Shown: one piece after another, positions 258 through 61,216 of the stretch | How the letters are laid out: every line of letters begins with the position of its first letter | Position numbering within the stretch: the first letter of the stretch is position 1 | Assembly (NCBI GenBank): GCA_051294905.1 | Contig: CM119381.1 | Coordinates: 8,804,001-8,868,000, forward strand | Length of the DNA: 64,000 nt | Reading direction: 5' to 3' | From: Botryllus schlosseri | Lineage: Eukaryota | Program-made: the position numbers and the translations under genes | The notes under the pieces: model-generated | What the model saw: only the letters and a program-made list of their open reading frames with translations | What the model was told of the DNA's origin: nothing | The model's database searches: none

Positions 258-890
258 ATGAAAAGTTGTTGAGAGTCGTTTCTCAAACTCATGAATTAAT
301 TTCGTCAATAATATTTATACATGCACAATGCACATATTAGGCTACTATCAAATATTTATCCTTTCTCCGCCCATGTGATCATATTTACCGGTACAGCTGA
401 TGGAGGGTTGTATTCTAAAATTTAGTGCACATAATTAATGATGAGATTAAAATTTTCAAGTCAAAAATTGAGTAGCCAATAAGTCGTAAATTCAAATTGC
501 ATTTTGGCGGCAATCAACACACGCTCATTACGTGTAGACGGCCGCACAATTGTACTTATACGGCCGCAGGTTGGCCTCCCCTGGCCTAGGGTTTATCTGA
601 AAACCAATCTAACGAAGGATTCTCACTCAATTCCAATCCGTAAATTCCGAACTAACAGCCCGCGCTGCAACATCATGGACTCTGCTGCAGCTATCTAGCG
701 CTCGCCACTACGAATACATGGTATTGTCCTGGCTTCATGGACATTCGCCATTTAACGGTGATGGGCCGGTCGACCTTTCCTCGTAATTATTTGATTGTGC
801 CATATTCGACAAGCTCAAATACCGGTACTTACAAAATATATAATTTCGACGTAGTAAAAATATAATTAGCAAAGTAAAAACACAACTGAA

Positions 891-3800
891 TCAGCCATAA
901 GGTCCTTTCTTCTTCATGAGGCCTTCTCTCGCCTTGATGAACGCCATGATATTAGCATCTGTGTCTTTATCGCCGGTTAAAGGTATTTTCGTATCGCTCC
1001 CTTGCTGCTGCATTCTTATACCAGAACTCAAGCTACGATGGAGCATCCCAGATTCGTTATCACCAGGCATCGCTCTCCTGGACGGTGCACTATGGCTCGA
1101 ATTTTGTTCGGACGGCATGGAAATGCCTGAGTTTGTGACGGGTAGCCTGAACGCTGGAACTGGTACGCGGTAATTTCCTACGGGCGGTTTAGTCCTTTGT
1201 GAGGGTGATGTGTCGGCAGGATGTGCCGGAGGCTTTGGGTATCGGTGGGGTGATTCGGGCGGGGTTCTCCACGCTTCTTTCGTTCTGGTTGAGGTGGACG
1301 GCAAAGGCACGTCGGAGTAACGATAACCGTTACCATTGAATAATTGCTTTTGGACGCTGGAAGATCTAAAAACGATATTGATTAAAGCGTACAAAAATAG
1401 CAATAGATCGTAGAAGAAAAAAAGTAATTCGTAACTGACAATCTCTCTTGGCCAGACATGGTCGTATTGGGACCCTCCTATCTGGATTAACGAAATAAAA
1501 CCGTAGAATGGTTGATCATATCAGGGTTGTAACCAAGTCACAAGGTTCCGAGTCCCAAGTCAATCTCGCTTTTATAGTTTTGACTCGAGTCAAGTCGAGT
1601 CATTTTCAATTCACCACCGAGTCAAGTCAGCTAATAGAGGGCAGAGTCCGAGGCGGATCGTTTTTACTAGAGTCCGAGTCCAAGTCATTATGGTCAACGT
1701 TCAGTTTTCAGTTCAATCCGGTTCAATCCAATTGTTCCAACTCTGCTCGAGTGATATAGAATGGCTCGCATTCACAATATACAAATTCTCCTCAGTCTTA
1801 ACAGTTTCTGACCCTATTTTCCAAGTATCACGACTGATAGATAAAACACCAATGATGTGGTAACTTTACTATTCTTCGAAGTTACGATGAAATGTCTGTC
1901 TTGGCCATCCTAGTCTTGAGTCTTATTTCTTGGTTCGAGTCATGCACATGCACAATGACTCGAGTACAAGTCCAGTCAATACAAAAATAGACTCGAGTCG
2001 AGTCATTTTACTCAAGTCAAGTCGAGTCACCAAAAATCGTGACTCAAGTCATTACAACCCTGGATTACATTGTATTGTAAACATCAGCAATTTCAGGGAT
2101 AAAGTCTACAAGTTTATCAACAAAGGCATAACTTGTCAATGAAAATTTAATCATCAACTCATATTCAGGTAATACGAAAGTCTACAATTTATAGGATAGT
2201 GAAAAAATATATGACTGTTGGAGATGTTCAAATTTTCTAGGTACCCCCCGTAATCGGAAAAGTTCGTCTACCTTGATTTCCCGCTTGGTGGTCTTGTGCT
2301 TTGTTGACTCCACCACACGTCGAAATCTCTTTGCATCTGCACCCGAGTCCGATCGAGTAGATGATGTAAATGGTCTATTTCAGCTTTCATCGCCTTCAGC
2401 ATCGTGAATGATTCCTTGTACCTGCGGCAATATGTAAGTGAAGCTTTGTCCATGGTGGTGGTTCTCAATGATGGAAAAGCCGCAGCCAGAAGCCAATCTA
2501 TTGACTAAATGCTTATTTCAACTCAAAAATACGGACATGACATTGATGAAAAGCTCATCAGCGCAGAAAATGGACAAAAAATGACTTAAGCCCCTAGTAG
2601 CCTCAAAAATATTGGGTACTCCACAAAACTTCTTGATGGCAGCAAGTGTTTTAATCTTTGGAAAGAACGACAAGCCAGGAACTGTGCGATATTACCGGTA
2701 ACAGTCCACTTACTCTTCTTTGACTTCTTCCATTTGCTGTCGAATTTGCGATTCTTGCTCGTTGTCCTCAAATGAATCGTCACTCCCGCTGATGGTGGCT
2801 AACAGAATTTGTAAAATTTGAATAAAAAGTGTCCATAAAGCTTCAACAAGGGAACGTAGATCAGACGGATTTAATTATTATCTCAGATTTGATTCGAGCA
2901 GATTCATTGCATAAATGGAATGGTATTGGTAATTTCAGGCACTTTTGGCTATATCAGGATATAGTATTGAATAGAAAATTACCGTTGCCTATCACCAGCA
3001 TATATATCCTGCAACTGTTAACTATGCATGACATGATTAATCCACATAATACACACACCTAAACAATGGTCATGATGAGTTTGGGCAGTTATGAAATGAG
3101 AAACTGGAATGAGCTGTCCCAAAGGCAAGTTACCACTGTACCTCTTTGAATGCTTTTTGTGTGTTTACTGCAAGCAGTTATATTTTGGTAATCACTGTTC
3201 CTATGTGCGTGCCAGTTCACTTCCCTTCCGTCACTCAGAAATTAATGTCGAATGTACCAATGTAATGCAACAACATAGACTATGTCTGCTTTAATAGTAG
3301 CAAAATTCGGAAAAAGTCTGATCGTATGACTGCATTACTATGCAATGTTTGTATCTCGTGTGGAGCTGTGGTCTGAGGGTGAATATCCATAATTCACATT
3401 GGCCAAATCTAGCAAAATGGTAGATCTCAACAAAGTATTGAAAAGACACACACTAGGATTTCAATGCATCGTTCTGCAATTGATAGGAAATATAAGTTGC
3501 GAAAGATTCAGCAAAGCACACATACAAAAAAACAGGATGAGAGAGACGACTCACTTGACTGTTAGTATAAAACATAAATGAATGAAAAGTGCGTTAACAG
3601 TACCACCACTATAGAACAGTATTTCGCAAGCAATCGGACAGTCGCCGAGCAAGTTTTCATGAAAGTCGAAATATGAACAGATTTCACGCACGATTCTACA
3701 AATCAAGATTAGCAGATTACGAACTGACATATTTTTGCCGAACGGGTTAACGGGAAAATACGAAAATTCACGATTTCTCTCATACATCCCCAAGCCCGTT

Positions 3801-47400: not shown

Positions 47401-50400
47401 CGCTAGCTTTAGGAAAGAGTCATCGATCGAATACGGAACCTCGTGTTGCGTAACAAACGGTTGTATTTGTGTGAAGATCGGATTGCATTGGGAAGGTCAA
47501 ATAAGGAACCAAAATCAATTGTGCGTAATCCCTAGTGCAATCCACCTGTGGGTTATCCCAATGACTGATTTCCCGCCTAATTAGTCAGAGAATGATAGTG
47601 ATTGGAAGCCACTCACCTTCGACAGTAGCAGATGCAATAAGCTTTTATAATGACATCGGTCATCAAACACGCATTCTGCATCATCATTTCGTTCTGGGCT
47701 CCGACTAGCGGGCAGTGCCAGTATATTGCGACAAACATTTGTCTATGGTCAGTGGTCACGCCGTATATCTGGGTGTATAATTAATAGCTGTAGTAGTTTT
47801 AACTGCTGTGACATAGCTCAACTACATGGTATGTGTACAAAACTCCGGTGCCTAAATGCTATAACCGTAGCTCTGCCACGTATATCATTCACCACAGCTG
47901 CTATTATACTTGTTAAATATAAGGAAAGTTGGTATAAAGTTTTATGTTCATCCAGGCCATTCACGAAGTATGTAATTCCAAAGCTGTGTTGTCACATGCT
48001 GAACTCGCAAATTGCTTTTGTTGTAAAATGAATGTACAATTGGACATTTGCACGATCTACATTTAGTCGTGCATTCGACGTATGTATACGAGATTCCAAT
48101 GAGCATATATTGCATGTATGTATTTTTTCACCAGTCGTAAATGAAACAGAAATGAGCATGAACAGTGAAACAGGATACATAAATTTTCAATTGTAGGTCA
48201 TATCGCGACCAGGACGGGAAATGCCGTACACGTCATCTCACTCCCGAAAATATTACCTATTGTTGTCGTGTACTGGACGGATTTGAAGTTGTATAACAAT
48301 TCATATAATAACATATCACTATAACATATCACTATATTTTTCTAACGAATGATACGGAATGAAGTTCGAAACATTTGCAATATATCCGAAACTAGTCCCC
48401 CCCCCCCCTTATCGTCATATCACAAAATCCAACCGGGATTCTAGCAACCCCAACAGATTGTTTGATGACATGGAATGTTATGACGGTTGATGAGAGAATC
48501 CAAAAATATGAAATTCGGTCTATATATAGAGACACACGTGTGAATGGACGGAGGTAAATCGCGCAAAGTGCGAATTTTTTTTCAAGTTGACCGCTTCTTC
48601 GCGCCCCCCCCTCCAGGTTGAGAACCAGTGCATTAGAATAACAATATCAGTTTCAGCGCGTTCCTGTAGTTTTGCTTCGACATTTGTACTGTCGTGTGCC
48701 GTGAAATGCGCTGGGTAACTATTAAATATGCAAGTTTCGAAATTATAGTCATTATAGTCATTAAAGCATCACGATTTCGGGTCCCAGAGATCAAGATTTG
48801 GGTCGCAGCAAAAAGGTGAAGAACCACTGCTGGATCTGTGATTGGTCCTGGCTATACCAGAACTATCAATATCAACTAATCGTATGCCTTGTTGTCTAGT
48901 TACATCGAATTCGTTTAGCTTGGTTGGTAGACCGGCAGATATTGGTAGACTTAATTGCATAGCCATACCCGGCTTTAGTAGCTATACTATGATATTCCTT
49001 ACCAATCGATATTGTAATCTATAGTTCTTTAACTAGAATTGCGGGATTGATTTTCATGCTTCAACGAAGCTTGATTTAGTTTTCCTATATAACGGGGATT
49101 TGTCAGTGCCTTGACATATATCGCCTGCAATAGTCACTCTTACCATATGCAGATAATGGATCAAAGATTGTTGACGTGATGAAGAACAACAATTGTGACT
49201 TTACAACTGCCATTGGCGATAGGCAATCTACAACGCCAAAACCAGCTACTGGGAGCTGTCGTGATGCTAATCAGTGCCGTGCGTTCAAAAGCGAATCAAA
49301 CGCGGTTGATATTCAAAGTATCGTCAATGATCTAGTAGATAAGACGGTTTGCAAGCTAAGTTTGGAGAAACCACCTCGGGTGGCGAGGTACCGAAAATCA
49401 CCGACTCTGGGAATATACAGCGACTTGTGCACCCGAAGGGAATCGGAACCCAGCGTAAGGTTATCGCAGACTGACAAATTGAGGCTACACCAAAGCGGTT
49501 GCAAGAAGCACGAAGCAATATCCGAGAATCCTGTCGAAGATGGGGGCTTGAAGAAATTTTACAAACTCGCGTCTTTGACGCTGGAAAAGAATTCAAGTTC
49601 GGAGCCGAAGATCGCCGACTTCGCTGCGCTTCTGCAAGCAAAAGGCATCTGGCTTTCTGACCCGAGACTCAAGGAGACTCTTCGTGTTATCAAAAAAGAG
49701 CCGAAGAAGGAGGAAACCGAGCTCACGGAAGACGTTTTTAAAAGGTGAACTAAATACATATTTGAAACAGAGATTGATATTCGTCCAAAAATATCTTTCA
49801 CGTTGTATGGAAAATCCGGTAAATACCAACAGATAATTTTGAAATATCTGAATACTGCTGTAGCTGCCGTTAATGTTTTATGACAAATATCAAATATCGA
49901 CGGCAAACTAAATACTTATTTGAAACAATCAGTTCACATACCGTATGGAAATGCGGTAGATACCCACAGACAATTTTGTAAAATATCTAAATGGTGCTGC
50001 ACCGCTAATGTTTTATGACAAAGATCATATGTAGACTTACCTACAGCAAAATAAAAAAAACTTGAGTATATACCGTATATATTTTTGTCCTTGATGTATG
50101 TTTTTGTGGCATACCCCGAGTCATCATACACATACTAGTGCGGAGCGGATCGACAAATTCTCTGGTCCGGCTCCGGTCGTATCAGGAAAAGTACTGATCC
50201 GGCTCCAATCCGACTCCGGCCAAAAATGAAAAAGTTCGACCCTACACGGTACGGGGGTTCCGTGAATTGATAAATATGCCTCGCTTATGTTCGCACTGGC
50301 TTGGCGTTTACTTGCGTGTGGTTGGTTGGTAGTTATTTAGTTATGAAATTCATGCTTATCCATAAAGATTCCGGCCGTAACAGAAAAAGTACTGATCCGG

Positions 50401-53400
50401 CTCCGATCCGGTCCGGCTAAAATTGTAAAATTCCGGCCGGATATCCAATCCGGCTCCGGTCCATGCTCCGCACTAATACATACATGTGATCTGTTTTCTG
50501 CGAGTCAGTTTGAACTAATAGCATTTAGAGCAGGGGCGGGCAACATACGGCGCGCGACGGGATTTTGTCTGGCCCACGGACACTCTCCCGTCCTACATGA
50601 TAATGTGGCCCACGTTTCCAGTGTTATGCTGTCAATAGAAACGATGCTCACCAAATTTGGTTCAATTGCAACCACTGGAAGTGGAGTTATTGCCGTCGAA
50701 AAATTTGGATTATGATTAAAATAGTATTCACGGTGACCGATTCTTTGTTTATTTAATATACTGGTGCTCACCGTAAATACTATTTTATTCAAATCAAAAT
50801 TTTTCGACGGCAATAACTCCGCTTCCACTGGTTGGAATTGAACCAAATTTGGTGAGGACCGTTTCTATAGACAGCCTAACACTTTCATGGGGTGAACAGA
50901 AAATTTTCAAATTTTTTATTATTTATTTATATATAATAAATAGAAACTTTATTCTCCTGTAGCAAAGCGGTTACTGGCTGGAATTGAACCAAATTTTGTG
51001 CGTAGGCTTAAATTAGGTAACCTAACAATTTTATCAAGTAGCCAGTACGATTTGAGAAAAAAAGTCAGTTTTGAAGAGCCCTAATGAGCATTCATGATAA
51101 TATCCTTATATCATGTCCAAAGTCTAATCCGGTTTCGTGAACCGTAGTACCATCCAAATTCAAGGTATATATTCAAATCTGGATTTCCAAGTTCAATGTA
51201 AGTCGATGCTAATGCATATCACCCTGTTAATATATTGCGAAAACATGAATGTACTTAATCCAACTGGAACGTGTTGTCTTTATTATACATATATGATTCG
51301 CCTTCTATTGTAGGATTTGCACGCCTGCAAGTCAATTGGTTCGGCGCTTGCTGTTGAGTCAACTGACTATACCCGGATTTCAAGTGTTCCGAAAAGGAAT
51401 GGCGAAGATTTACCAAAGCATTGTCACAGAGCTGACGGCAATGGTATTGTGATTACACTAATTAGCTTAGTCCTACAGCCTGTATAGGCCAGGTATACGC
51501 AGTTGGTATGACTGAAAATTTCAATATGCGCCATGAATTGCTGTTTAGCAACGCACAGTTTTTGACATTGTGTTTTGGTGGTAAGGAGAGCGCATCTCTT
51601 GTCGCGTTTGAACTACAGGTCGACCGATTATCGACCAGGCCGATATGAGGAGCTTTTCCGATATCGCGACTGATATTTTATATATTAAAAAATTCAAAAA
51701 TATTGGAAATTCAATGCTTCGTGTTCTCAATCTCAAGAAATCGACGACGCAAAAGGCGATACGTGACAAATTTACCCTTGCAGGGCGAGTTTAACTGGGT
51801 GAGCAACTGAGCATGCAGAGAAAATATGATTCCTGCAGTACAATCTACCTCTACAGGCCTGACCTACAATTCTGTATCACGTTTTTCTTTTTGGGTTATC
51901 CCAAATTTCAATGAATGCGCACAATTAAGCAATAATTCTTTTTAATTTCAGTTTTCTTGTTTGTTGTTCAAATTTCTGTTGCATGTACAAGTGCCATCTT
52001 GACTAATACATAATATTTTTGCCGAAATGGTTCCCTGCTCCTTCCATATTAATATCGGCCTATGATATCAGTTATCGGCCTTGTGAGTGTGCCGATAATA
52101 GGTATCGGTCTGCAATAATCTGTCGACCTCTAATTCGAACTGGAGACGTTCCGTACAACCGCAAGAGCGAAGATCTATGTCCCCGTTCCGTGGTATGTGG
52201 CAACAACACCAGCGACGTCTTCAAAGCCGCTGTTGCCTGTTGGAGGTCTTTCTTTTGGCACGCCAACCCCAAGGGCGCCCAGATTAAATCGATGGTTGCA
52301 AACTTTGACCCACAAAAATATAGGCTCCATATTTGAACTTTTAAGGTCATAATTATCATTATTGTTACTACGTCATAATAGAGGGCTCTCGAATGCACGA
52401 CTCGACTCGAAGTTTAGTAGGCCTATAGACTCGGAATCGACTCACAGACGAATTACTCGATTTCTCCCAACCAATCGAAAGTTGACTTCGTTATCTGAGG
52501 TTGAGCTGAAACGGCAACTCTCGTCTAAGATGGATATTGAGACGACATCGCGACCAATTTTCGAAAGTTCCGTGAACCACTTACGGCAGGGGCGGCCATC
52601 CTATAGCCCGCGAGAAGATTTTGAGTGGCCCGCGAGATAATTCTCGAAGTTAGTATTAATATCACATAATAAATTTCTCCGGCACTTTACTTTGAACTTC
52701 CAAGACCAACCAAAATTTGATCAGCCTGATTTCGAAATTTGGGATGTTGATGACTTAAATACCAGTTCCAACGCGTTCGCGCAGCCAGGGGCCAGCAACC
52801 TTTCTCGTAGATCTCCCTATATGACCACAAAGTAGATTTGTCGTTGTAGATTTATTTGACTTGATATTTTTCTTAGCACTTCGCGCGATATTGTCACTCA
52901 ATTTCTTGAATTTAGTACCACTTCCAGAGTGGCCCGCGCTATGGTTCGCAAATCTCATATGGCCCTTTGGCCGAAAAGGTTGGCCGCTCCTGACCTACGG
53001 GTTAAGAACAAGTTGGTTGAACAGTGTGCTATTCGAGTAGTATTGGATTTCGGTATCAACTTTGCTATAAAATCTGTGCAACACCAACAGCGGGGTTTGG
53101 TACAGAATCCACTATATCAATCAGCCAAATAGTATTTTTTTCATCTGTCAAACGAAAAGGAACCTACAATCAAGCACTCCGGCTATGATTCGTCGTCTAA
53201 TTACATCGACTTTATGCAAAGCAGAAGATCGGACAAGTCGAAATCTGTTAGCATGTCAGTATGCACTGTCGATGGTCAACGCTTGTCTTACGGAGATCAA
53301 GGTAAGAAGATTAAGTTTGTAAAGTGACGAAATCGCATGTGCATAAGCCTCGTGTTTACGATACATAGCTACCCTCCATTCCCTTGATTCGTGTGCCGCC

Positions 53401-56400
53401 GTGTTGAACTACTGCATAGCATGTCGCAAAAATGGGATTCAAGCCATGAAATCGCGGATCGGAAAGTCGGCTCTTTTGCGAAATGAGGTAACACAGACAT
53501 ATGTTTAGGCCTGTGTCTGATTAAAAGACCACTTCAAGTCGTTTCGGCACCCTCCTATACGACAATTGTTTGCTTGCCGTGCAATAGGGGAACATTGCGA
53601 CATTTATACGTCAGTCAGTTAACAATGCGAGTTGAGAAATGAGTTGGTCCGTTATGACTTATCTTGTTAATGCTGAACAACCTTCCAGAGCAAGGGGCAA
53701 ATTTATGTACCCAATATATATATATAGCCTATATATATTTATGTATTATCAAAATGAGTTCCAGTTTTAGTATCAGTTCAAGTATTCGGTTGTTAGTTTG
53801 ATAACTCGAATATTTGAAAACAAAATTTCCATGAGAAATATACGTATCGCTGGTGAATGTGAAAAATGTTACAATTGTTGGCCTGTACTACGGGTCAGCC
53901 AGACTCAGCATCATACGGAAAGCCGCGGTTGTGGTTACATTGATAGCATTCTCTTTCGTTCAAGGATGAATTTACATTTGACGAAGACGACAAGGTTTTG
54001 AACCCTTTTACCAAAGCCGGGTCGATCCTGACTTGCGCAACACTTTTGCATAAAGAACTCACGGAGATGCAGGTCGACGAAGTGCACGAAATATATTCGC
54101 AAGCCATCGCAAACGAACCGCTGTGCTGCGATAATCTGAGGTAATACGAGTATATGACCTACTGAAATTTATCTATGGGTTACATAACGTAACGTAACGT
54201 AACCCTACAAGCTGCCCACCACACCAAGGAGATTAAATTCTTCATTCTCCGTATACATGGACATGATCAGAACGCCCCACCCTGGCCTTATAAACGTCTC
54301 TTGAGCTGCATAGGTAGGAAAACTTGGAGGCGCTTAAGCAGATCGCGATTTACGAGTCACGTTCTCCTAACCCATACCTGGTCAAGTCTACTTCAACATT
54401 TATATACTCTAACTTTGCAACAAAACATCTATCATATTATATTCATTTTTCAATGTAATTGCATTCATAACAAAACAAACTATAAAAATTATCAAGGATC
54501 TAAATGACAGAAACTGATTCTATACTCAAAATCTCCTGAATAGTATACGCTGAATTTACTCCAATAGTTGGAGTGGGGCTAGAACTTTATTGCAGGGTCA
54601 GGTAGTTTATTCATTGATGAACAATAATATTTCGATAAAAATTATTACAAAACCTACAACTTATGACACGGAAATGCAGAAGTCACAAAGCACTCCATGA
54701 CGTTGAGTGCATTTTTCGCGAAAAAAAGTGTTCTAGGATCAGAAAGAATTCAGACCAGACATGAAGGTACTCATGCTCCTGGCACCAACCAAAGTAGATG
54801 CGATTCCATTAAATTGAAATTTGTCTAGCTTTATGCACATGAAGGTAAATCAGATTGAAGAATGCATCGGGGAGCAAAATCATTATCTAATTTCAAGTAT
54901 CCTTCGTACGTAACTAATGTTATTTGTATGAATTCAGTAATCGGTATCAACCCAAAGAACTTGGGGCAGTCTTATTTCCGTGTAATATGGATCTCACTGC
55001 ACCAGAAAGCACATTACAATAAAAAAAAAACATACAGTCCGCACAGTAAAGGGGTGGCAAGTGGCTTTTATCACAGCCAACTTGAAATTTCTTTTGTTCA
55101 TTGTCAAATTGGCATGGAAAGGAAGCTTCGTCTTGGTGCATCGTGAGTATTTCCATGACACTTTTTTACCAACACCATTCTGGTTTTAAGCAACGGATAT
55201 CATGACAGGTTCAGGCATAGTTCAGTGTGAAAATTTTCAATTGCTTGTCAGAATCATTTTCATGGCAGTGCATGACAGACAATATGCTATTTTCGATAAT
55301 AATCTTTTATCTCCTGTAGTAGATTCATTAAAACAATCAATATCCTGGTAAAGTATTTAAAGACATGGATCACATTTCAACTGCAGAACTTGTGGTCATC
55401 TGCTGCATCACCTTAGTTACAAATTTAATCTTGGTAGTTTCGTTGTATACAACTTCAATACAATTTTAGCATTGAGCATATGCTGTCGGATAAAGATACC
55501 AACCTAAAGGGTTCGTGTTCAGTTATCAGTGAAGCATGCGGTAGGGAATCGGTTATCCAAAAGGTATCCGGAACATGCTCATTCATGGGGTTTCTTGTAA
55601 ATCGCTTCCACGAGCCCTTTGGGAAAACCGCATGAGTTACAAATACGCTGACCCTGGAAGCGCCAGCCGATTTCATGCAAGCGATGCATCTTTGTACAGT
55701 TCCGCCGGTGTTGATCAAGTCGTCAACGATTATCACATGTTGGTTTTTCGGATTCCCATCCACTATTGTGACCTCACGTTCACTTCCTTTACGTCGTTTT
55801 ATACAGCGGATCACAGGGAAATCCTTGAAATAATAACTGAACCTTTTATAAGCGCCTTCGTCTGGGAATGCTATGGCAATTGGGATATCGTCTTCAAATT
55901 GGTTGATAACTTCAATGAACTTTGGCATCGCCGATGCAAGTTTAGGAACGATATTATCGCTGAAATAGAATCTTTCCTGAAGAGCGTGGATGTCATATGT
56001 CATCAAACGAGCTGGTCCCATAGAAGAGAGTGGTATCGCTGATAGCAACCTTGCCATAGCAACAGCTGTAGCCACTTGACCTTCGGTGTCGACTCTTTCC
56101 ATTGTCCCAGTGTTGTAATAAGGAAGTACAAAAGTCAGTGATTTGATTGAAGATTTAGGTAATGTATATAAAACGGAAATCTGCTCAAATATAATAGCAG
56201 GAGAGTAAAAGCTTCCGACGAAGATCACGTGCTTGTCACTGAAGTCCTCGATGTTTTCGATGAAAATGTTGGGATAGCCATCCTCGAATGCATTCCACTT
56301 TACGGCGTCCATTCTAACATCCACCCTCACCTTGCTATTAGATTGAGAACATCTGGCTGCGATTTCTTTTTCGATCCTCGCGACCAACGTCTTCATATCC

Positions 56401-59400
56401 CGGTGGCAAATGAGGATGGTGTTTTGGCCTGACATAGCGAGCTTCACCCACCAGCTTTTACATTGATACCAGTTTCTGGTTCTGGTTGTGATGTTTACAT
56501 TTCTCTGCTGCTCGGTGTTCCGCTTTAGCTGATAAGTCAGCAAAATCACTCAACCGTGACTGGAAATTTTGCGGTTGAGTAGTTCGAATTTTATTGAGAA
56601 ACTCACTTAGAGTTCGGGTCACTGAGTGGGTTCGGGTTTCGATTCATTATCGAATGTTAACATGGAATGGCAGCGACCGATTTTGCAGCCTCGTTTCGCT
56701 TCGCTGAGGCTGGAGTCAGAATTATTTCGCGGCAGTGACTGGCAATCGAAAAGTTATCTTCCAGAGCCAGGAATTTACGGAATCTGGTCTTGATAACTTC
56801 TGGATTGCCTGAAATCCTACAGTCGCTGCCGCAAAATTATTCTGAACTCAGCCTTAGCGAAGCGGAACGAAGCTGCAAAATCGGTCGTTGCCATTCCATG
56901 TTTACATTCGACATATTCACAATGTAGATTGCAATCGGGTCAAGTTATTATGCCATGAATGCAGAAGAAACAATACAACAGAGAATAAAATGTCGAAATT
57001 TGCCGCGACGATTGCCTAGCTCATTACAAACTGCACAATATTTATTAGTTATCGACTATGAGAATTGCTCCTGTCCTGGCTGGGTGGCTCGGCTCTGAAG
57101 ACTTTGTCATATCGAGCCTAACGTCTACCTTGCATGTCGCATTTCAATGTTACATTTTTGCAATGTTATGTTGATATGTTATGTATACGAATAAAGATGC
57201 TCTCTCTCTCTCTCTCTCTCAATAGTGCATGCGTTGGCGAACACAGTTGTGTCTCATAATACAAAAGTAAAATCTAATTCTTATCATGATATGTGAAAAT
57301 TCACGGTTCTTCGATATTGTAAGGACATATGTCCATTATCCGAGTTAGGGAGCAAGATTTGTATTGAGTGGCGCAGTATCGTAGAATCTTTGGTAGAATC
57401 TTTGGTTAGAATCTTCTCAGCGTATAACTTTTTTGCTTCAATATTGCTGCCAACCTACCAAGCTGGAAAAGTGGTTATGAATATCGTAGGCCCCGTTACC
57501 CCGGCTACAGACAAATCAGTTTATCTTCCTTCCTCCGACCTATACCCCCGTCATTATTTTTATCAGAACTTATGCATCCGTAGTTTTAGCGGTAGCCGGA
57601 TCATTTTACGATGAGTCGAATAAGACGACGGACGTATTGCGAAATTCTGTTTGTATTACGATAGCTGTTACGGCACGCACCGCTAAGATTTTCTCGGGCT
57701 GGAACGAGCCACCCGACCGACAAAAACCGATCGTTCCTGTAGCTCATCAGGAAACAGTGGCGCCGGACCCACACAATGTACCGATATGGGTCCGTCAATT
57801 TGGACTGGACAGCGCCGGGGACCGTCCTGGTCGCGTCAAGCACTAGCATAGATAGCGCCGCTCCGAGCTTCATCGTTTCGTTCACTCCGCCCGTTCCATC
57901 GAAGTCGGTTATATATAGTTATTTGCGCCCTTTCTAGCCCTACATTTCGATTGATGTTGTCGAATCTCAACATAAATATGGAACGATGGAATTTGATTTG
58001 TGTGATCTCTGTACGGACGATTTGTTGGTTTGAGTTTGCTAATACGATCAGTGAGCCCTGTTCAATCAAAGACTAACGTATATCCCACCGTGACCATATA
58101 CTGCCCGAGAGAGAATGTCCGAATAAACGTTCTGCCCAAAACGTTTGTCCCAAATGTATTGTATTCATTTCAGCTACAATCTCAAGAGATTGTACGCCCA
58201 CGAAGAAATATCTCTAGCGTATTTCTTGAGTGCAAGATTGAAACTGCCGAGGATGTGCGTTCCTGGGGATCTATTGGAATTCCATTTTCAATCTTCGTCC
58301 ACGGCCGTTACTTGTGACTCGGCATCTATCGCAGCGGCAACTATTGCAAATGGCGGACAATGTCCTCTGACAGGTGACAAGTCAACAATCGACCAATAGG
58401 CTTACCACGCTATCTTTGCCAAGATAAGTAAGTCAATATGTCTGCAAATATGAATATTGGCTACGTCATAAATGCATCCAAGAAAACGTATTTTCGATAT
58501 GGCATGACTAGAACTGACGAGTTAGCACAATCAATCATACTTGTATTCACAGCCGCACCTCAAACCTAACTAATTGAGGAAAGGGTAAGTGCGAAAGGGC
58601 ACAAAAATTAGTAATTTCGGTAATTTTCTCAAATTTCAAATGGTTTCTTTCGCAATATTACCGCGTCCCTCTTTATGTGGCAAGTGATCGTTTCGATTAT
58701 CTAGTGCAGTTGTTCTCAGACTTAATTAGACACCCCCATTTATGAAAATGAACAATTTCGCGCCCCCTTATCGTGACTACACTAATTATAAATTAGCGCG
58801 AAAAATTCGGTTGACCGCAGCTTCGCGCCTACGTTCAGATGCTTTTACGCCCCTAAGGGGGGGGGGACTGATCTAGTTAATAGTAGTGACTAAGCGACGT
58901 GTTTCATTGTTTGTGGTTACGTCAAATGATTTGTTCATTGCTAAAACTGAAAATAACGATGCTGATACGAAAACAGCGCCTTGTATCCCCCAACAAGTTC
59001 GTTTGACCACCATATAAATTGAGTACCAAACTTTTGGGTATTGCGGGTGACATCCATACGTGCTTCGTTGCTGCGTCGCTCGAGTCCGACAGAATGCCAG
59101 CAGGGCCTAACAGCTCCTTGCCAGCACACATAGTTCGGTGTGTTCATTCCGAAGTGGAAGATTCCTACGAGAGAAGAAGTTCGCTTCATAACATAAACAG
59201 CTATTGAAAATGAGTCGTGGGGTGAAACTTAATACAAAAAGTCGATATTGAATCACTTCCCCGTAACAAAAACATCTCCTTTCCAGATGAAACAGTTTTC
59301 AAGGAAGAAATTATTCAGCACACTCTGAAGCGTATGCGATGTAGCTTGTCGAAATATACCGACTGTAAGGAGGTATAGTTACTAGTTAAATAGGCCTACC

Positions 59401-60075
59401 TATTGTTTTATTTATGATTCATCGCATATTTCTGTTGACTGTTGATTTTCAATAGATGGAAGATATCTGTTGTACAACGAGTGAAAGCGGCACTGTATTT
59501 CTTGTCATACCCGGCGTTCTGGGACTCGTCTTTTTCCTGCATTCATATCCGAGACCAACAGTTTCGAAAGTGGTGGACTCTTTGATTCATGTGAGTGAAT
59601 TGATTGGGACTTTGAGAGCATAGATAGTCGTTACCGAAGTACTTCTCAAGTACGCTTACTCGAGTAGGTTAACCAACTTGCTGTACTCAAGTTCCATCCT
59701 TTAGGATATTTCCACTTCTGTTTGAACAGGTCCTACATCCACAGCACTCCAATTTGGACTTTGAGAATGTTGTAAAGTAGAAAGTAGTTTATGATAGGCT
59801 CGCATGGATTTCTGAGAACTACAACTACTTTTGTTCACGGAGCATGCCGCATCTGATGTTTGAAGTTCGTCGCGGCTCTTCGAAAATATAGTGATTACGG
59901 GACGACAAATTCCACACTATTACCACACAGCGCATAGACTCGAAATCAGATTGGCAGTGCCTGTGCCTGAATGCAGAAACATGTTGAATTTTTATCACAG
60001 AATTTAGGAGCTGAGTTCAATTTCTCGCTGTACCGAAATTTGAAGAGCCGAGAAGACAGATGCTGCAAACGATGA
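44450..60075 (+). CDS. Divergent glutaminase-like protein (GLS fold, degenerate active site, long N-terminal extension, no ankyrin tail), about 760 aa
   Basis: Exons: 44450-44986, 47051-47156, 49153-49744, 51314-51443, 53175 (or 53160)-53301, 53369-53487, 53965-54140, 58174-58373, 59287-59372, 59456-59590, 60001-60075. All are GT-AG and phase-consistent. GLS-like segments: KGIWLSDPRLKE, LTIPGF, SVCTVDGQR, DEDDKVLNPFTKAG, VTCDSASIAAATIANGGQCPLT, VFLVIPGVLG, FNFSLYRNL. The first two exons and the start codon are less certain than the GLS-homologous exons. Confidence 0.8.
44911..45074 (+). repeat. 82-bp tandem duplication spanning an exon end and splice donor
   Basis: 44911-44992 and 44993-45074 differ by one base. 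Each contains ATGCAG|GTGCGT. Confidence 0.95.
45292..45683. mobile_element. hAT-like MITE (TCGAGTACTCGA family)
   Basis: TIR TAGGGCTGGGCA...TGCCCAGCCCTA with a perfect TSD cttgtagg. Confidence 0.9.
45715..46789. mobile_element. Longer non-autonomous hAT-like element (TAGGGTTGCCAT, GTCCGGAA repeats)
   Basis: TIR TAGGGTTGCCAT...ATGGTAACCCTA with gttgtat duplicated on the flanks. Collinear with 63372-64000. Confidence 0.85.
50136..50475. mobile_element. hAT-like MITE (CCGGCTCCGG family)
   Basis: TIR TAGTGCGGAGC...GCTCCGCACTA; TSD acacatac/atacatac. Confidence 0.85.
50635..50868. repeat. Inverted repeat with arms of about 77 bp
   Basis: 50635-50711 pairs with 50792-50868 (accaaatttggttcaatt...ggagttattgccgtcgaaaaa). 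Confidence 0.85.
51614..52132. mobile_element. hAT-like MITE (CCGATA/ATCGG family)
   Basis: Ends TACAGGTCGAC...GTCGACCTCTA; flanks gtttgaac/attcgaac (6/8). Confidence 0.65.
52587..52992. mobile_element. hAT-Charlie-like MITE (GGCCCGCG family)
   Basis: TIR CAGGGGCGGCCA...TGGCCGCTCCTG; TSD acttacgg/acctacgg. Confidence 0.85.
55455..56435 (-). CDS. Class II (plant PRS3/PRS4-type) ribose-phosphate pyrophosphokinase, intronless, 326 aa
   Basis: First ATG at 56435 (the ORF track starts at an upstream GTG). PRTase PRPP-binding motif VIIVDDLINTGGT. Class II signatures: FEDGYPNIFI, SPAIIFEQISV, TGTMERVDTEGQVATA, YDIHALQERFYF, AFPDEGAYKRF, VTHAVFPKGSW, FWITDS. These closely match Arabidopsis PRS4 as recalled. 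Confidence 0.92.
   Translation of the reverse strand: MSGQNTILICHRDMKTLVARIEKEIAARCSQSNSKVRVDVRMDAVKWNAFEDGYPNIFIENIEDFSDKHVIFVGSFYSPAIIFEQISVLYTLPKSSIKSLTFVLPYYNTGTMERVDTEGQVATAVAMARLLSAIPLSSMGPARLMTYDIHALQERFYFSDNIVPKLASAMPKFIEVINQFEDDIPIAIAFPDEGAYKRFSYYFKDFPVIRCIKRRKGSEREVTIVDGNPKNQHVIIVDDLINTGGTVQRCIACMKSAGASRVSVFVTHAVFPKGSWKRFTRNPMNEHVPDTFWITDSLPHASLITEHEPFRLVSLSDSICSMLKLY
56650..56911. repeat. 262-bp fold-back palindrome immediately upstream of the PRPS gene
   Basis: The left arm tcgaatgttaacatggaatggcagcgaccgattttgcagc... pairs with the right arm ...gctgcaaaatcggtcgttgccattccatgtttacattcga over more than 100 bp. Confidence 0.9.
57070..57220 (+). mobile_element. Retroelement 3' tail with AATAAA and (TC)n
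   Basis: ...atacgaataaagatgc(tc)n has the same tail architecture as 28023-28050 on the minus strand. The 5' boundary is approximate. Confidence 0.45.
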
Positions 60076-61216
60076 AGTCGACGATGAAATCTTCTCATAG
60101 AATGGCGCAATACCACTATTAAGGTCGCAAAAATACCTTTGTGGTTGTGTTTCGTAAATATTTCTGGACTATTTGTGCAACAAATATATTTTCATTGCTA
60201 AAAAACCTCTGAGGAGCAGCCGAAACAAAGGATATATGTAGTAAATATTATTACACGAGAGCAGAGGTATATATACATAACACTCAAGCCATACATTTAG
60301 AGAGTATTATAATTATTTATTTGGGATAGGTATGTATAGATGAGATAGGATAATGTATAGTATATTGAACCATTGTAACTATTCAGCAAATAATGCGGTT
60401 GGAACGGAGGAGTACTTTAGAAACTATAAAAGGGTGTCGAGTTCGCTTTGCGAACGACGGAAATTTGGAGGTTTGCGTTCGTAACCGAACCATTCAAGGT
60501 TCGCAGTGTAGTGGGAAATCTCGGCAGACCAGGGCCGCAGGCCACATCATCATGTAAAACGGAAAACTCTCCGCGGGCCAGACAAAATCCCTTCGCGGGC
60601 CGTATGTTGCCCACCCCTGCGTTATGTGCAAGCGGTTGTCAAGTTGGAAATGTTTACAGCAATAGGCGATATTTCATTGGTTGATTCTATTATGTGTAGT
60701 AACACATTAAAATATCGCGATAGTATTTACTGAAATTCTATTTGACAAACGGAAAACTGGATCGCGAATAGAGTTGTAAGTTTCAAGGATTGTTTCAAAG
60801 TATAATCTTGAAATGTGACTTGATCAAAGTTGGTAGTCATGTTTGTCAAACCTATTTCAATTCATACTATGCCAAAGTCAAAATATTTCATTTCGGTTTA
60901 TCTAAATTTATCTATAGTAGTACATCTCGCGAATGGATTCCGACGCCCAAAAATATCTGACTCGTTATGTCTGATGCATTATCCTGTCAGCGACCGTAGG
61001 GTTTTACAATTATTTCACACCTTTTTGAATAAGCGTTAACTTCGCAAAAGATTAGGGTTGGATCAGAAATAAAGTGAGAATTTGTCGGTATTCGAATCAC
61101 CGTCTGCAACGGTTCTGTTATTCGTTACTTATTTAATCTTACCAGTGAAACCTCAGATAATCGAATTCCTGAAGCCGGATGAATTTTCCGTGACTGGGAA
61201 ACAGCTACAGAGTAAA

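Follow-up and report, generated by a model that had tools for sequence, protein, structure and literature searches.

A complete gene for a predicted class II PRPP synthetase (PRS) lies antisense within a single intron of a glutaminase-like host gene in the window, that is, the whole stretch of 64,000 nucleotides of Botryllus schlosseri DNA that was analysed. We consider it very probable that this is an ordinary pair of host and nested gene, with PRS inserted into a formerly tiny intron, and that it forms no dedicated metabolic module. The earlier note on this DNA had proposed such a module and had named a chance insertion as the alternative, which turns out to be the better reading. In two further ascidians, the corresponding intron is very short and empty.

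Structure and transcription of the nested pair

The PRS coding sequence occupies positions 55455..56435 of the minus strand as a single exon of 326 codons plus stop, with the ATG at 56435, the stop codon at 55455-57, and an intact ORF of 326 aa. Its transcript (54495..56496, minus strand, ~2.0 kb), recovered in assemblies of RNA-type runs, is unspliced: One X2 contig of 2002 nt spans 54495-56496, further contigs come from X1 and X9, and raw RNA reads of X23 cover the unit with sharp coverage borders. The untranslated regions of this transcript measure ~61 nt at the 5′ end and ~960 nt at the 3′ end. Coding sequence and transcript are both contained entirely within one plus-strand host intron (54141..58173, 4033 nt), which begins with GT directly after 54140 and ends with AG at 58172-58173, followed by C and then YNLK...; AG|C read across the intron is a serine codon, so that the intron is of phase 2. 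The intron also contains a dispersed inverted-repeat element with 92-nt arms (56650..56911, no strand assigned), which belongs to neither gene and is located past the PRS start towards the downstream host exon. Outside the PRS unit, the depth of RNA reads over the remaining intron is close to zero except at a dispersed repeat, and no RNA family of Rfam matched positions 53000-60500.

The host gene was traced on the plus strand on both sides of the nest. Upstream lie a region with a glutaminase-type EF-hand_14 (49545..49745, borders approximate, within the ORF 49176-49748), an exon ending ...SVCTVDGQRLSYGDQ (53187..53300, 5′ border approximate), an exon with a degenerate Ser-x-x-Lys site (53369..53487), and the exon that abuts the intron (53965..54140, DEFTFDEDDK...CCDNL plus AG), the latter placed by homology and an RNA junction. 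Downstream follow the best conserved glutaminase-homologous part of the gene (58174..58373) and 2 further exons at 59287..59372 and 59456..59590. Splicing across the nest is seen directly in two X1 contigs that stop at 54140 and continue with 10 letters identical to 58174-58183, and the host transcript carries on through junctions 58373|59287 and 59372|59456 in the X1 and X2 RNA-type assemblies, with one X2 contig reaching 24 letters past 59590. The earlier note had placed a whole minus-strand PRPS ORF in this phase-2 intron, between exons ending ...CCDNL and beginning SYNLK...; ORF and borders were verified, and the RNA contigs add the splice junction itself.

Both genes are transcribed, with RNA evidence from four runs and from contigs of further runs, and their mature RNAs do not overlap, the PRS mRNA touching no host exon. 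Expression was scored as presence or absence in assembled contigs together with one unstranded raw run. By contig presence, both transcripts were found together in at least 5 runs (X1, X2, X3, X4, and X6); in study P4, X10 has a portion of PRS and no host exon, and X11 and X13 contain the host exon and little else. The assembled RNA runs therefore display neither strict co-occurrence nor strict exclusion of PRS and host, and such contig-presence data are compatible with an anti-correlation between cell types.

The guest gene is a predicted class II PRPP synthetase

The PRS ORF scores 114.5 bits against TIGR01251 (ribose-phosphate diphosphokinase; cut-off 113) and carries the domain pair PF13793 (Pribosyltran_N, 32.8 bits) and PF00156 (Pribosyltran, 36.6 bits). 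Its identity is 45-62% to tunicate, other invertebrate, and plant proteins that carry the names PRS4-like or PRS3, and 45-55% to PRS4-like proteins of sponges, cnidarians, molluscs, echinoderms, amphioxus, and plants, as against ~25% to the class I gene of the same genome; solved class I structures are matched at E-values of 1e-12 to 1e-19. The catalytic motifs D-I-H-A, K-R-R, and V-D-D-L-I-N-T-G-G-T are retained, and a motif N-T-G-T-M-E-R resembles the class II RF-loop motif, which has been defined as “TTMER” (PMC13252144). Judged from homology and this motif, the guest is assigned to the class II (PRS3/4-type) PRPP synthetases, which would predict activity independent of phosphate, freedom from allosteric inhibition by ADP/GDP, and a broad range of diphosphoryl donors, and the earlier note's description of it as an unregulated-type enzyme holds on the same grounds. 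Class II enzymes have been reported in most metazoans though not in Craniata (PMC12238573), and the one of the amphioxus Branchiostoma lanceolatum has been shown to be active (PMC13252144). The genome studied here contains a single class II copy, and its class I gene lies on another chromosome. Contamination or horizontal transfer as the source of the ORF was considered and rejected, since tunicate homologues are closest and the gene tree places the ORF within the intronless clade.

The host gene is a probable pseudo-glutaminase

Homology of the host to glutaminases is clearest in the exon at 58174-58373, which matches residues 388-443 of human GLS (E 9e-10) and scores 26.6 bits against PF04960, reaching the cut-off of 27 together with its neighbouring exons. 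The Phallusia orthologue is 31% identical to vertebrate GLS over 241 residues (E 9e-37), and the exon at 53965-54140 shows 50% identity to the Phallusia “putative glutaminase 2” and 66% to its counterpart exon on contig L006 of a related species. When the host exons 53371-53487 and 53965-54138 were searched alone against solved structures, no glutaminase was matched because they are too short and divergent, and their identity therefore rests on the tunicate orthologues and the RNA junction. In an exon-sized protein search, the L006 ORF was the sole match, and Clavelina alone came up when the Phallusia GLS-like domain was used to look for homologues.

The Ser-x-x-Lys site reads S-C-A-A in the host, S-C-A-S in Phallusia, and A-C-A-T in C. 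savignyi. At positions of the substrate site, the host motif NPFTKAGS has Lys for Asn, and the exon at 58174 has Lys for Glu, Glu for Asn, and His for Tyr; we take the replaced residues to be Asn335, Glu381, Asn388, and Tyr414 in human GLS numbering. With the catalytic lysine gone and several residues for substrate binding missing as well, the host probably does not consume glutamine. It is a glutaminase homologue that is probably not a working glutaminase, and represents a paralogue found across tunicates and specific to them in which active-site residues have been lost. Compared with kidney-type GLS (PF04960 plus EF-hand_14), it has both the EF-hand_14 region and glutaminase-domain homology, but it is without the lysine of Ser-x-x-Lys, and the Asn, Glu, Asn, and Tyr of the substrate site are replaced. 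A canonical GLS is also present in the genome, on another chromosome. The earlier note's suggestion of a probable dead glutaminase is borne out by the missing lysine and the four substrate-site replacements, and the accompanying idea that glutaminase competes for glutamine loses its footing with an enzyme that probably does not work.

Distribution of the nesting among ascidians and beyond

The same nesting is found on contig L006, which stems from an independent assembly of another species and has the same three coding blocks, ordered and oriented alike; it is the only relative with the nesting that was examined (n = 1). Between the window and L006, PRS is 77% identical, synonymous sites are saturated, and dN amounts to 0.16 for PRS and 0.18 for the host exons. 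Both genes are under purifying selection. That so deeply diverged a relative has the same nesting rules out a misassembly as well as a recent origin.

Elsewhere, the host intron lies at the same codon position and phase and is empty, measuring ~180 nt in Clavelina and 55 nt in another ascidian (L012). PRS of Clavelina is on a different contig from the host. In Styela clava, PRS is intronless and flanked by MINDY4-like and JIP-like genes, and no glutaminase exon lies closer than 10 kb; these flanking genes are found on other chromosomes in the genome studied here, so there is no synteny. PRS is a single ORF in the window, L006, S. clava, and L007, and its location differs between S. clava, L007, and the window. 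Multi-exon versions elsewhere in the genome are seen in Clavelina (at least 5 coding blocks) and the starfish Patiria (at least 6). The gene tree places window and L006 within an intronless clade that has S. clava and L007 as successive outgroups. Compared across species, as the earlier note had suggested, the arrangement is thus kept in L006 and absent in Clavelina, L012, Styela clava, and the starfish; the nesting is restricted to one ascidian sub-clade.

Origin of the nesting and alternative explanations

From these observations, the following course of events is probable. An old metazoan class II PRS would have lost its introns when a stolidobranch-like ascidian clade arose. In the ancestor that this species shares with the L006 species, it would have come to sit antisense in a very short phase-2 intron, which would then have expanded to 3.5-4 kb. 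The guest is transcribed from its own promoter into an unspliced 2-kb mRNA, and the host is spliced across it. The move itself was presumably an insertion, either through retroposition or through DNA rearrangement of an already intronless gene.

That the pair might be an artefact, with a misassembly or contaminant placing an unrelated PRS ORF between exons that are not joined, is hardly credible, and no evidence supporting it was found. The splice junction 54140|58174 is read in RNA-type contigs and the independent assembly behind L006 has the identical arrangement, which together contradict both the misassembly and the unjoined exons that the earlier note had listed as possible refutations; moreover, the nearest PRS homologues are tunicate proteins, and several other runs of the same organism contain 58-72% of the words of the stretch. 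A tentative option, somewhat doubtful on balance, is direct retroposition, in which a copy reverse-transcribed from processed PRS mRNA entered the intron directly and replaced the ancestral multi-exon gene. PRS is indeed intronless where at least four to five introns interrupt its orthologues in Clavelina and Patiria, the parental copy is gone (we found no second class II PRS copy in the genome), and the location of the gene is not the same in S. clava, L007, and the window. However, S. clava and L007, which branched earlier and have no nesting, also lack introns in PRS, so the introns were lost before the nesting. Of the hallmarks of a processed retrogene, only the contrast with intron-bearing orthologues is present: Past the PRS 3′ end there is no A-run as a poly(A) remnant, no flanking direct repeats or target-site duplication surround the PRS unit, and no parental gene is retained. 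The lack of flanking repeats also means that there is no sign of transposon-mediated capture. Direct retroposition bears on the route of arrival only and is compatible with our main explanation.

PRPP and glutamine are co-substrates of amidophosphoribosyltransferase, and the proposal of a co-regulated or mutually exclusive purine-glutamine module starts from this joint use: Antisense PRS transcription within the host intron would couple the two genes, with transcriptional interference as the basis of any mutual exclusion, and thereby link PRPP supply to a pseudo-glutaminase that senses or handles glutamine. The nesting has been kept in two species at saturated synonymous divergence, PRS and host are each under purifying selection, and some runs seem to hold chiefly one of the two transcripts, all of which would fit such a module. 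We nevertheless consider it quite unlikely. Both genes are present yet un-nested in Styela clava, Clavelina, the L012 species, and the starfish, and linkage does not follow wherever both genes exist, with different contigs in Clavelina, unlinked genes in S. clava, and an empty intron in L012. Competition for glutamine is inapplicable to a host without the catalytic lysine and substrate-site residues, at least 5 runs hold both transcripts, and the mature RNAs do not overlap. With the nesting restricted to a sub-clade, PRS found elsewhere in unrelated contexts, and the host probably inactive, the module put forward in the earlier note is not upheld. Persistence of the arrangement is expected by default, as any break of the intron would presumably destroy the host; that splitting the pair breaks the host is enough to explain why the nesting has lasted. 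As a counterpoint to the reading as an ordinary pair, the nesting has outlasted synonymous saturation, and selection on the arrangement could yield the same outcome. It nonetheless seems highly improbable that selection maintains the nesting because PRS transcription gates host splicing or elongation, or the reverse; if it did, the pair would act as a clade-specific switch, with PRPP production free of regulation on one side and a glutamine-binding pseudoenzyme with a signalling role on the other. For the ordinary nested pair that we favour, we infer no dedicated functional coupling of the two products and at most generic transcriptional interference; nor does anything point to binding between the two proteins.

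Significance and comparison with known systems

Animal genomes commonly have genes nested in long introns, so the find matters little as it stands. Its value lies in a cleanly dated case in which an old housekeeping-type gene would have entered a minimal intron and expanded it ~20- to 70-fold. In these ascidians, moreover, the one gene for a class II PRPP synthetase has been relocated and has no introns; the host, a conserved candidate pseudo-glutaminase of tunicates, may merit its own study. For annotation, PRS and host should be modelled separately on opposite strands.

As a protein, the guest shares the domain pair, the catalytic motifs, and a TGTMER RF-loop-like motif with class II enzymes such as plant PRS3/PRS4 and that of Branchiostoma lanceolatum. 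Its identity to named PRS4-like proteins from invertebrates and plants is 46-50%, and the genome has one such gene in addition to a class I gene. Holozoan class II genes have been reported to have common splice junctions (PMC12238573), whereas the gene is intronless in this ascidian clade. In being an intronless PRPP synthetase with multi-exon relatives it resembles PRPS1L1, the eutherian intronless retrogene of PRPS1 (PMC12238573); PRPS1L1, however, is an extra class I copy whose parent was kept, whereas here the intronless gene is the sole class II copy and the parent is gone.

As a gene arrangement, our literature search found no pair of a class II PRPS within a glutaminase paralogue. Nested pairs as such are frequent in mouse and human, where they favour long introns and mostly have no expression relationship (PMC11694760). 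With these mammalian pairs and with tim2/2mit of Drosophila (PMC3786989), the present case shares a complete, independently transcribed guest on the opposite strand in one long intron, and the likeness extends to the intronless guest, the non-overlapping exons, and conservation in a related species. What sets it apart from the catalogued pairs is that limits can be put on the age of the nesting, through an orthologous intron that is empty and only 55-180 nt long in other ascidians.

Anatomy and transcription of the nested gene pair

Splice-site sequence and RNA junctions together confirm that a PRPP synthetase gene lies nested antisense inside a phase-2 intron of a glutaminase-like gene, as the earlier note had read from the window (G000:C11:8804001-8868000 of a 495-Mb genome). 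The upstream exon of the plus-strand host gene (53965-54140) ends in C-C-D-N-L plus AG before a GT, and the downstream exon (58174-58373) is preceded by AG and begins with C and Y-N-L-K, so that the intron 54141-58173 is in phase 2. RNA evidence came from four runs of the same organism placed on 53650-59640: Two contigs of run X1 reach 54140 and continue with ten letters identical to 58174-58183, and the junctions of 58373 with 59287 and of 59372 with 59456 are present in contigs of both X1 and X2.

The transcript of the guest gene (hereafter PRS) is represented by one gapless 2002-nt X2 contig at 54495-56496, a sharply bordered interval that is also covered by contigs of X1 and X9 as well as raw RNA reads of X23, while the rest of the intron has around zero depth except for a repeat at ~56857-57160. 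Coverage of PRS exceeds that of the host exons in every one of the four runs and therefore reflects a separate transcript, not a retained intron; its strand was inferred from the ORF because the X23 library is unstranded. The mature PRS and host RNAs do not overlap: 355 nt of intron separate the host donor site from the PRS 3' end, and ~1.7 kb lie between the PRS 5' end and the acceptor. The earlier interpretation is supported in its structural part.

The host intron also contains an inverted repeat of a dispersed family, with 92-nt arms of 88% complementarity (56650-56741 and 56820-56911, and 57085-57160), and a short (GA)n microsatellite (57200-57216) adjoins this repeat element. A first look gave more than 1200 candidate sites of the family genome-wide, often with arms paired ~450 nt apart. 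RNA-type assembly depth in these intervals is as high as ~1400, probably due to many copies inside transcripts.

A class II PRPP synthetase as the guest

The PRS ORF (55455-56435, minus strand) is intact from ATG to stop over 326 codons, matches both Pribosyltran_N and Pribosyltran of Pfam, and scores 114.5 bits against the ribose-phosphate diphosphokinase model TIGR01251 (cut-off 113). Aligned to solved class I enzymes, the protein retains the D-x-H-A, K-R-R, and DD..T.GT motifs. Protein homologue searches placed ascidians as the nearest named relatives of the window's proteins, and the top database matches of PRS are ascidian-like sequences (75-77% identity), followed among named ascidians by the “PRS4-like” protein of Styela clava (62%), Clavelina (57%), Phallusia (55%), and Ciona savignyi (53%). 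Identity is 45-54% with the PRS4-like proteins from sponges, cnidarians, molluscs, echinoderms, hemichordates, and amphioxus, and ~48% with plant PRS3/4-type proteins. Class I enzymes lie much further away, with 25% identity to the class I gene of this genome on chromosome C14 and E values of 1e-12 to 1e-19 to class I PDB entries. Class II enzymes reportedly carry a “TTMER” RF-loop motif (PMC13252144), and in PRS its place is occupied by N-T-G-T-M-E-R. Taken together, class II homology, the distance to class I, and the RF-loop motif indicate that the previous label of an “unregulated-type” enzyme is correct at the level of family assignment.

Class II enzymes are reported from most metazoans except Craniata, with splice junctions conserved in holozoans (PMC12238573), and an amphioxus class II enzyme is reported to be active (PMC13252144). 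PRS is the only class II copy in the genome. The class I gene (G000:C14:5856351-5856932) lies within an open frame of 342 codons, approximately the length of a whole PRPS, and may be intronless or nearly so, like PRS.

The host is a divergent glutaminase paralogue

The downstream exon 58174-58373 gives a weak match to PF04960 (26.6 bits) and one to human GLS residues 388-443 with E ~1e-9; a PDB search with exon 53965-54140 alone gave no match, and this exon is 50-51% identical to the Phallusia “putative glutaminase 2” (P0123) and C. savignyi “glutaminase” (P0124). These two orthologues lay out a host gene of at least 49545-60051, a span that includes an ORF with a glutaminase-type EF-hand_14 domain. 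The Phallusia orthologue itself shares 31% identity with vertebrate GLS over 241 residues (E 9e-37), and the active site was read from this alignment and the window exons. Ser-x-x-Lys of GLS is S-C-A-A in the window, S-C-A-S in Phallusia, and A-C-A-T in C. savignyi. Furthermore, the window has Lys for the Asn of N-P-M-V-N-A-G, Lys for Glu381, Glu for Asn388, and His for Tyr414 (human GLS numbering).

The host is likely a pseudoenzyme because the lysine of Ser-x-x-Lys and several substrate-site residues are gone (especially within 53369-53487 and 58174-58373). With a canonical glutaminase present on chromosome C2, the host is a tunicate-wide paralogue that has probably lost catalysis. The paralogue (49176-60051, plus strand) is kept in Phallusia, C. 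savignyi, Clavelina, and two further ascidians, with orthologues of 970-1078 aa that have a long N-terminal extension.

Evolutionary history of the nest

The nest is present in L006 and absent in L012, Clavelina, Styela clava, L007, and the starfish Patiria. L006, a 5.4-kb Logan contig, encodes a PRS 77% identical to that of the window. Its alignment to the window consists of exactly three blocks, namely the PRS ORF and the host exon on either side of it, in the same order and orientation; non-coding DNA is unalignable. The phase-2 junction is the same, with an intron of 3.5 kb. Between the two species, PRS has a dN of 0.16 and the two host exons one of 0.18, and synonymous differences are saturated (proportion 0.82-0.90). 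Both genes are constrained, and the nested arrangement is old.

In L012, a contig with the host orthologue of another ascidian, the same junction C-C-D-N-L/S/Y-N-L-K is broken by only 55 nt, and the orthologous Clavelina intron is empty at ~180 nt. In Clavelina, PRS is multi-exonic and found on another contig, with adhesion-GPCR-like genes on one side and a CLP1 gene on the other. The intronless PRS of Styela clava sits between a MINDY4-like and a JIP-like gene, and there is no glutaminase-like exon up to 10 kb away; these two neighbors are on chromosomes C8 and C10 in the window genome. An intronless PRS followed by a PP1c-binding-domain ORF is found on contig L007, and the PRS of the starfish Patiria has several exons between ARS2 and WD40 genes.

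S. clava PRS and its neighbors (L011, 6473-13849) form three consecutive same-strand genes each annotated as single-exon (MINDY4-like, 710 aa; PRS4-like, 331 aa; JIP/RH1-like, 598 aa); in the window genome, the MINDY4-like gene is multi-exonic and the JIP-like gene one 605-codon open frame. Upstream of the compact glutaminase-like gene of L012, and partly overlapping its N-terminal exons, are plus-strand unannotated ORFs of 133, 250, 309, and 99 aa (353-3763) with no Pfam hit on record.

The PRS tree is (L007,(S. clava,(P0004,(window,(L006,P0002,P0003))))), where P numbers denote further PRS sequences, with Clavelina, Phallusia, and Ciona outside. Given this topology and the distribution of introns and nesting, the simplest history is a single loss of PRS introns at the base of the L007/S. 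clava/window clade, followed by entry of the intronless gene into a minimal ancestral host intron prior to the window/L006 split. PRS shows neither a poly(A) remnant nor a target-site duplication or flanking repeats that would mark its route of arrival.

Chance insertion favored over a metabolic module

The earlier note had proposed a module steering glutamine toward nucleotide synthesis, with chance insertion as its own alternative, and the latter is favored. Since a rearrangement that separated the two genes would cut the host, the nest should persist in L006 even if selection did not act on the pairing. No support was found for a dedicated PRPP/glutamine module, with linkage not kept wherever both genes exist. 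The premise that the host competes for glutamine appears to fail since the residues for glutamine hydrolysis are missing. Expression was gauged from word shares and placed contigs of runs, a poor measure, using a 4561-nt query of which ~0.44 is PRS mRNA and ~0.08 the two host exons. Both transcripts are present in X1, X2, X3, X4, and X6; X10 contains part of PRS with the host exon absent, and X11 and X13 contain the host exon and little else. For bulk samples and by this poor measure, these contents argue against strict co-expression as well as against strict exclusion.

More than one tenth of mouse and human genes belong to host/nested pairs, the nested genes lie preferentially in long introns, and expression is unrelated for most pairs (PMC11694760). 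The nest of PRS in its glutaminase-like host is a new example of this well-known genome arrangement.
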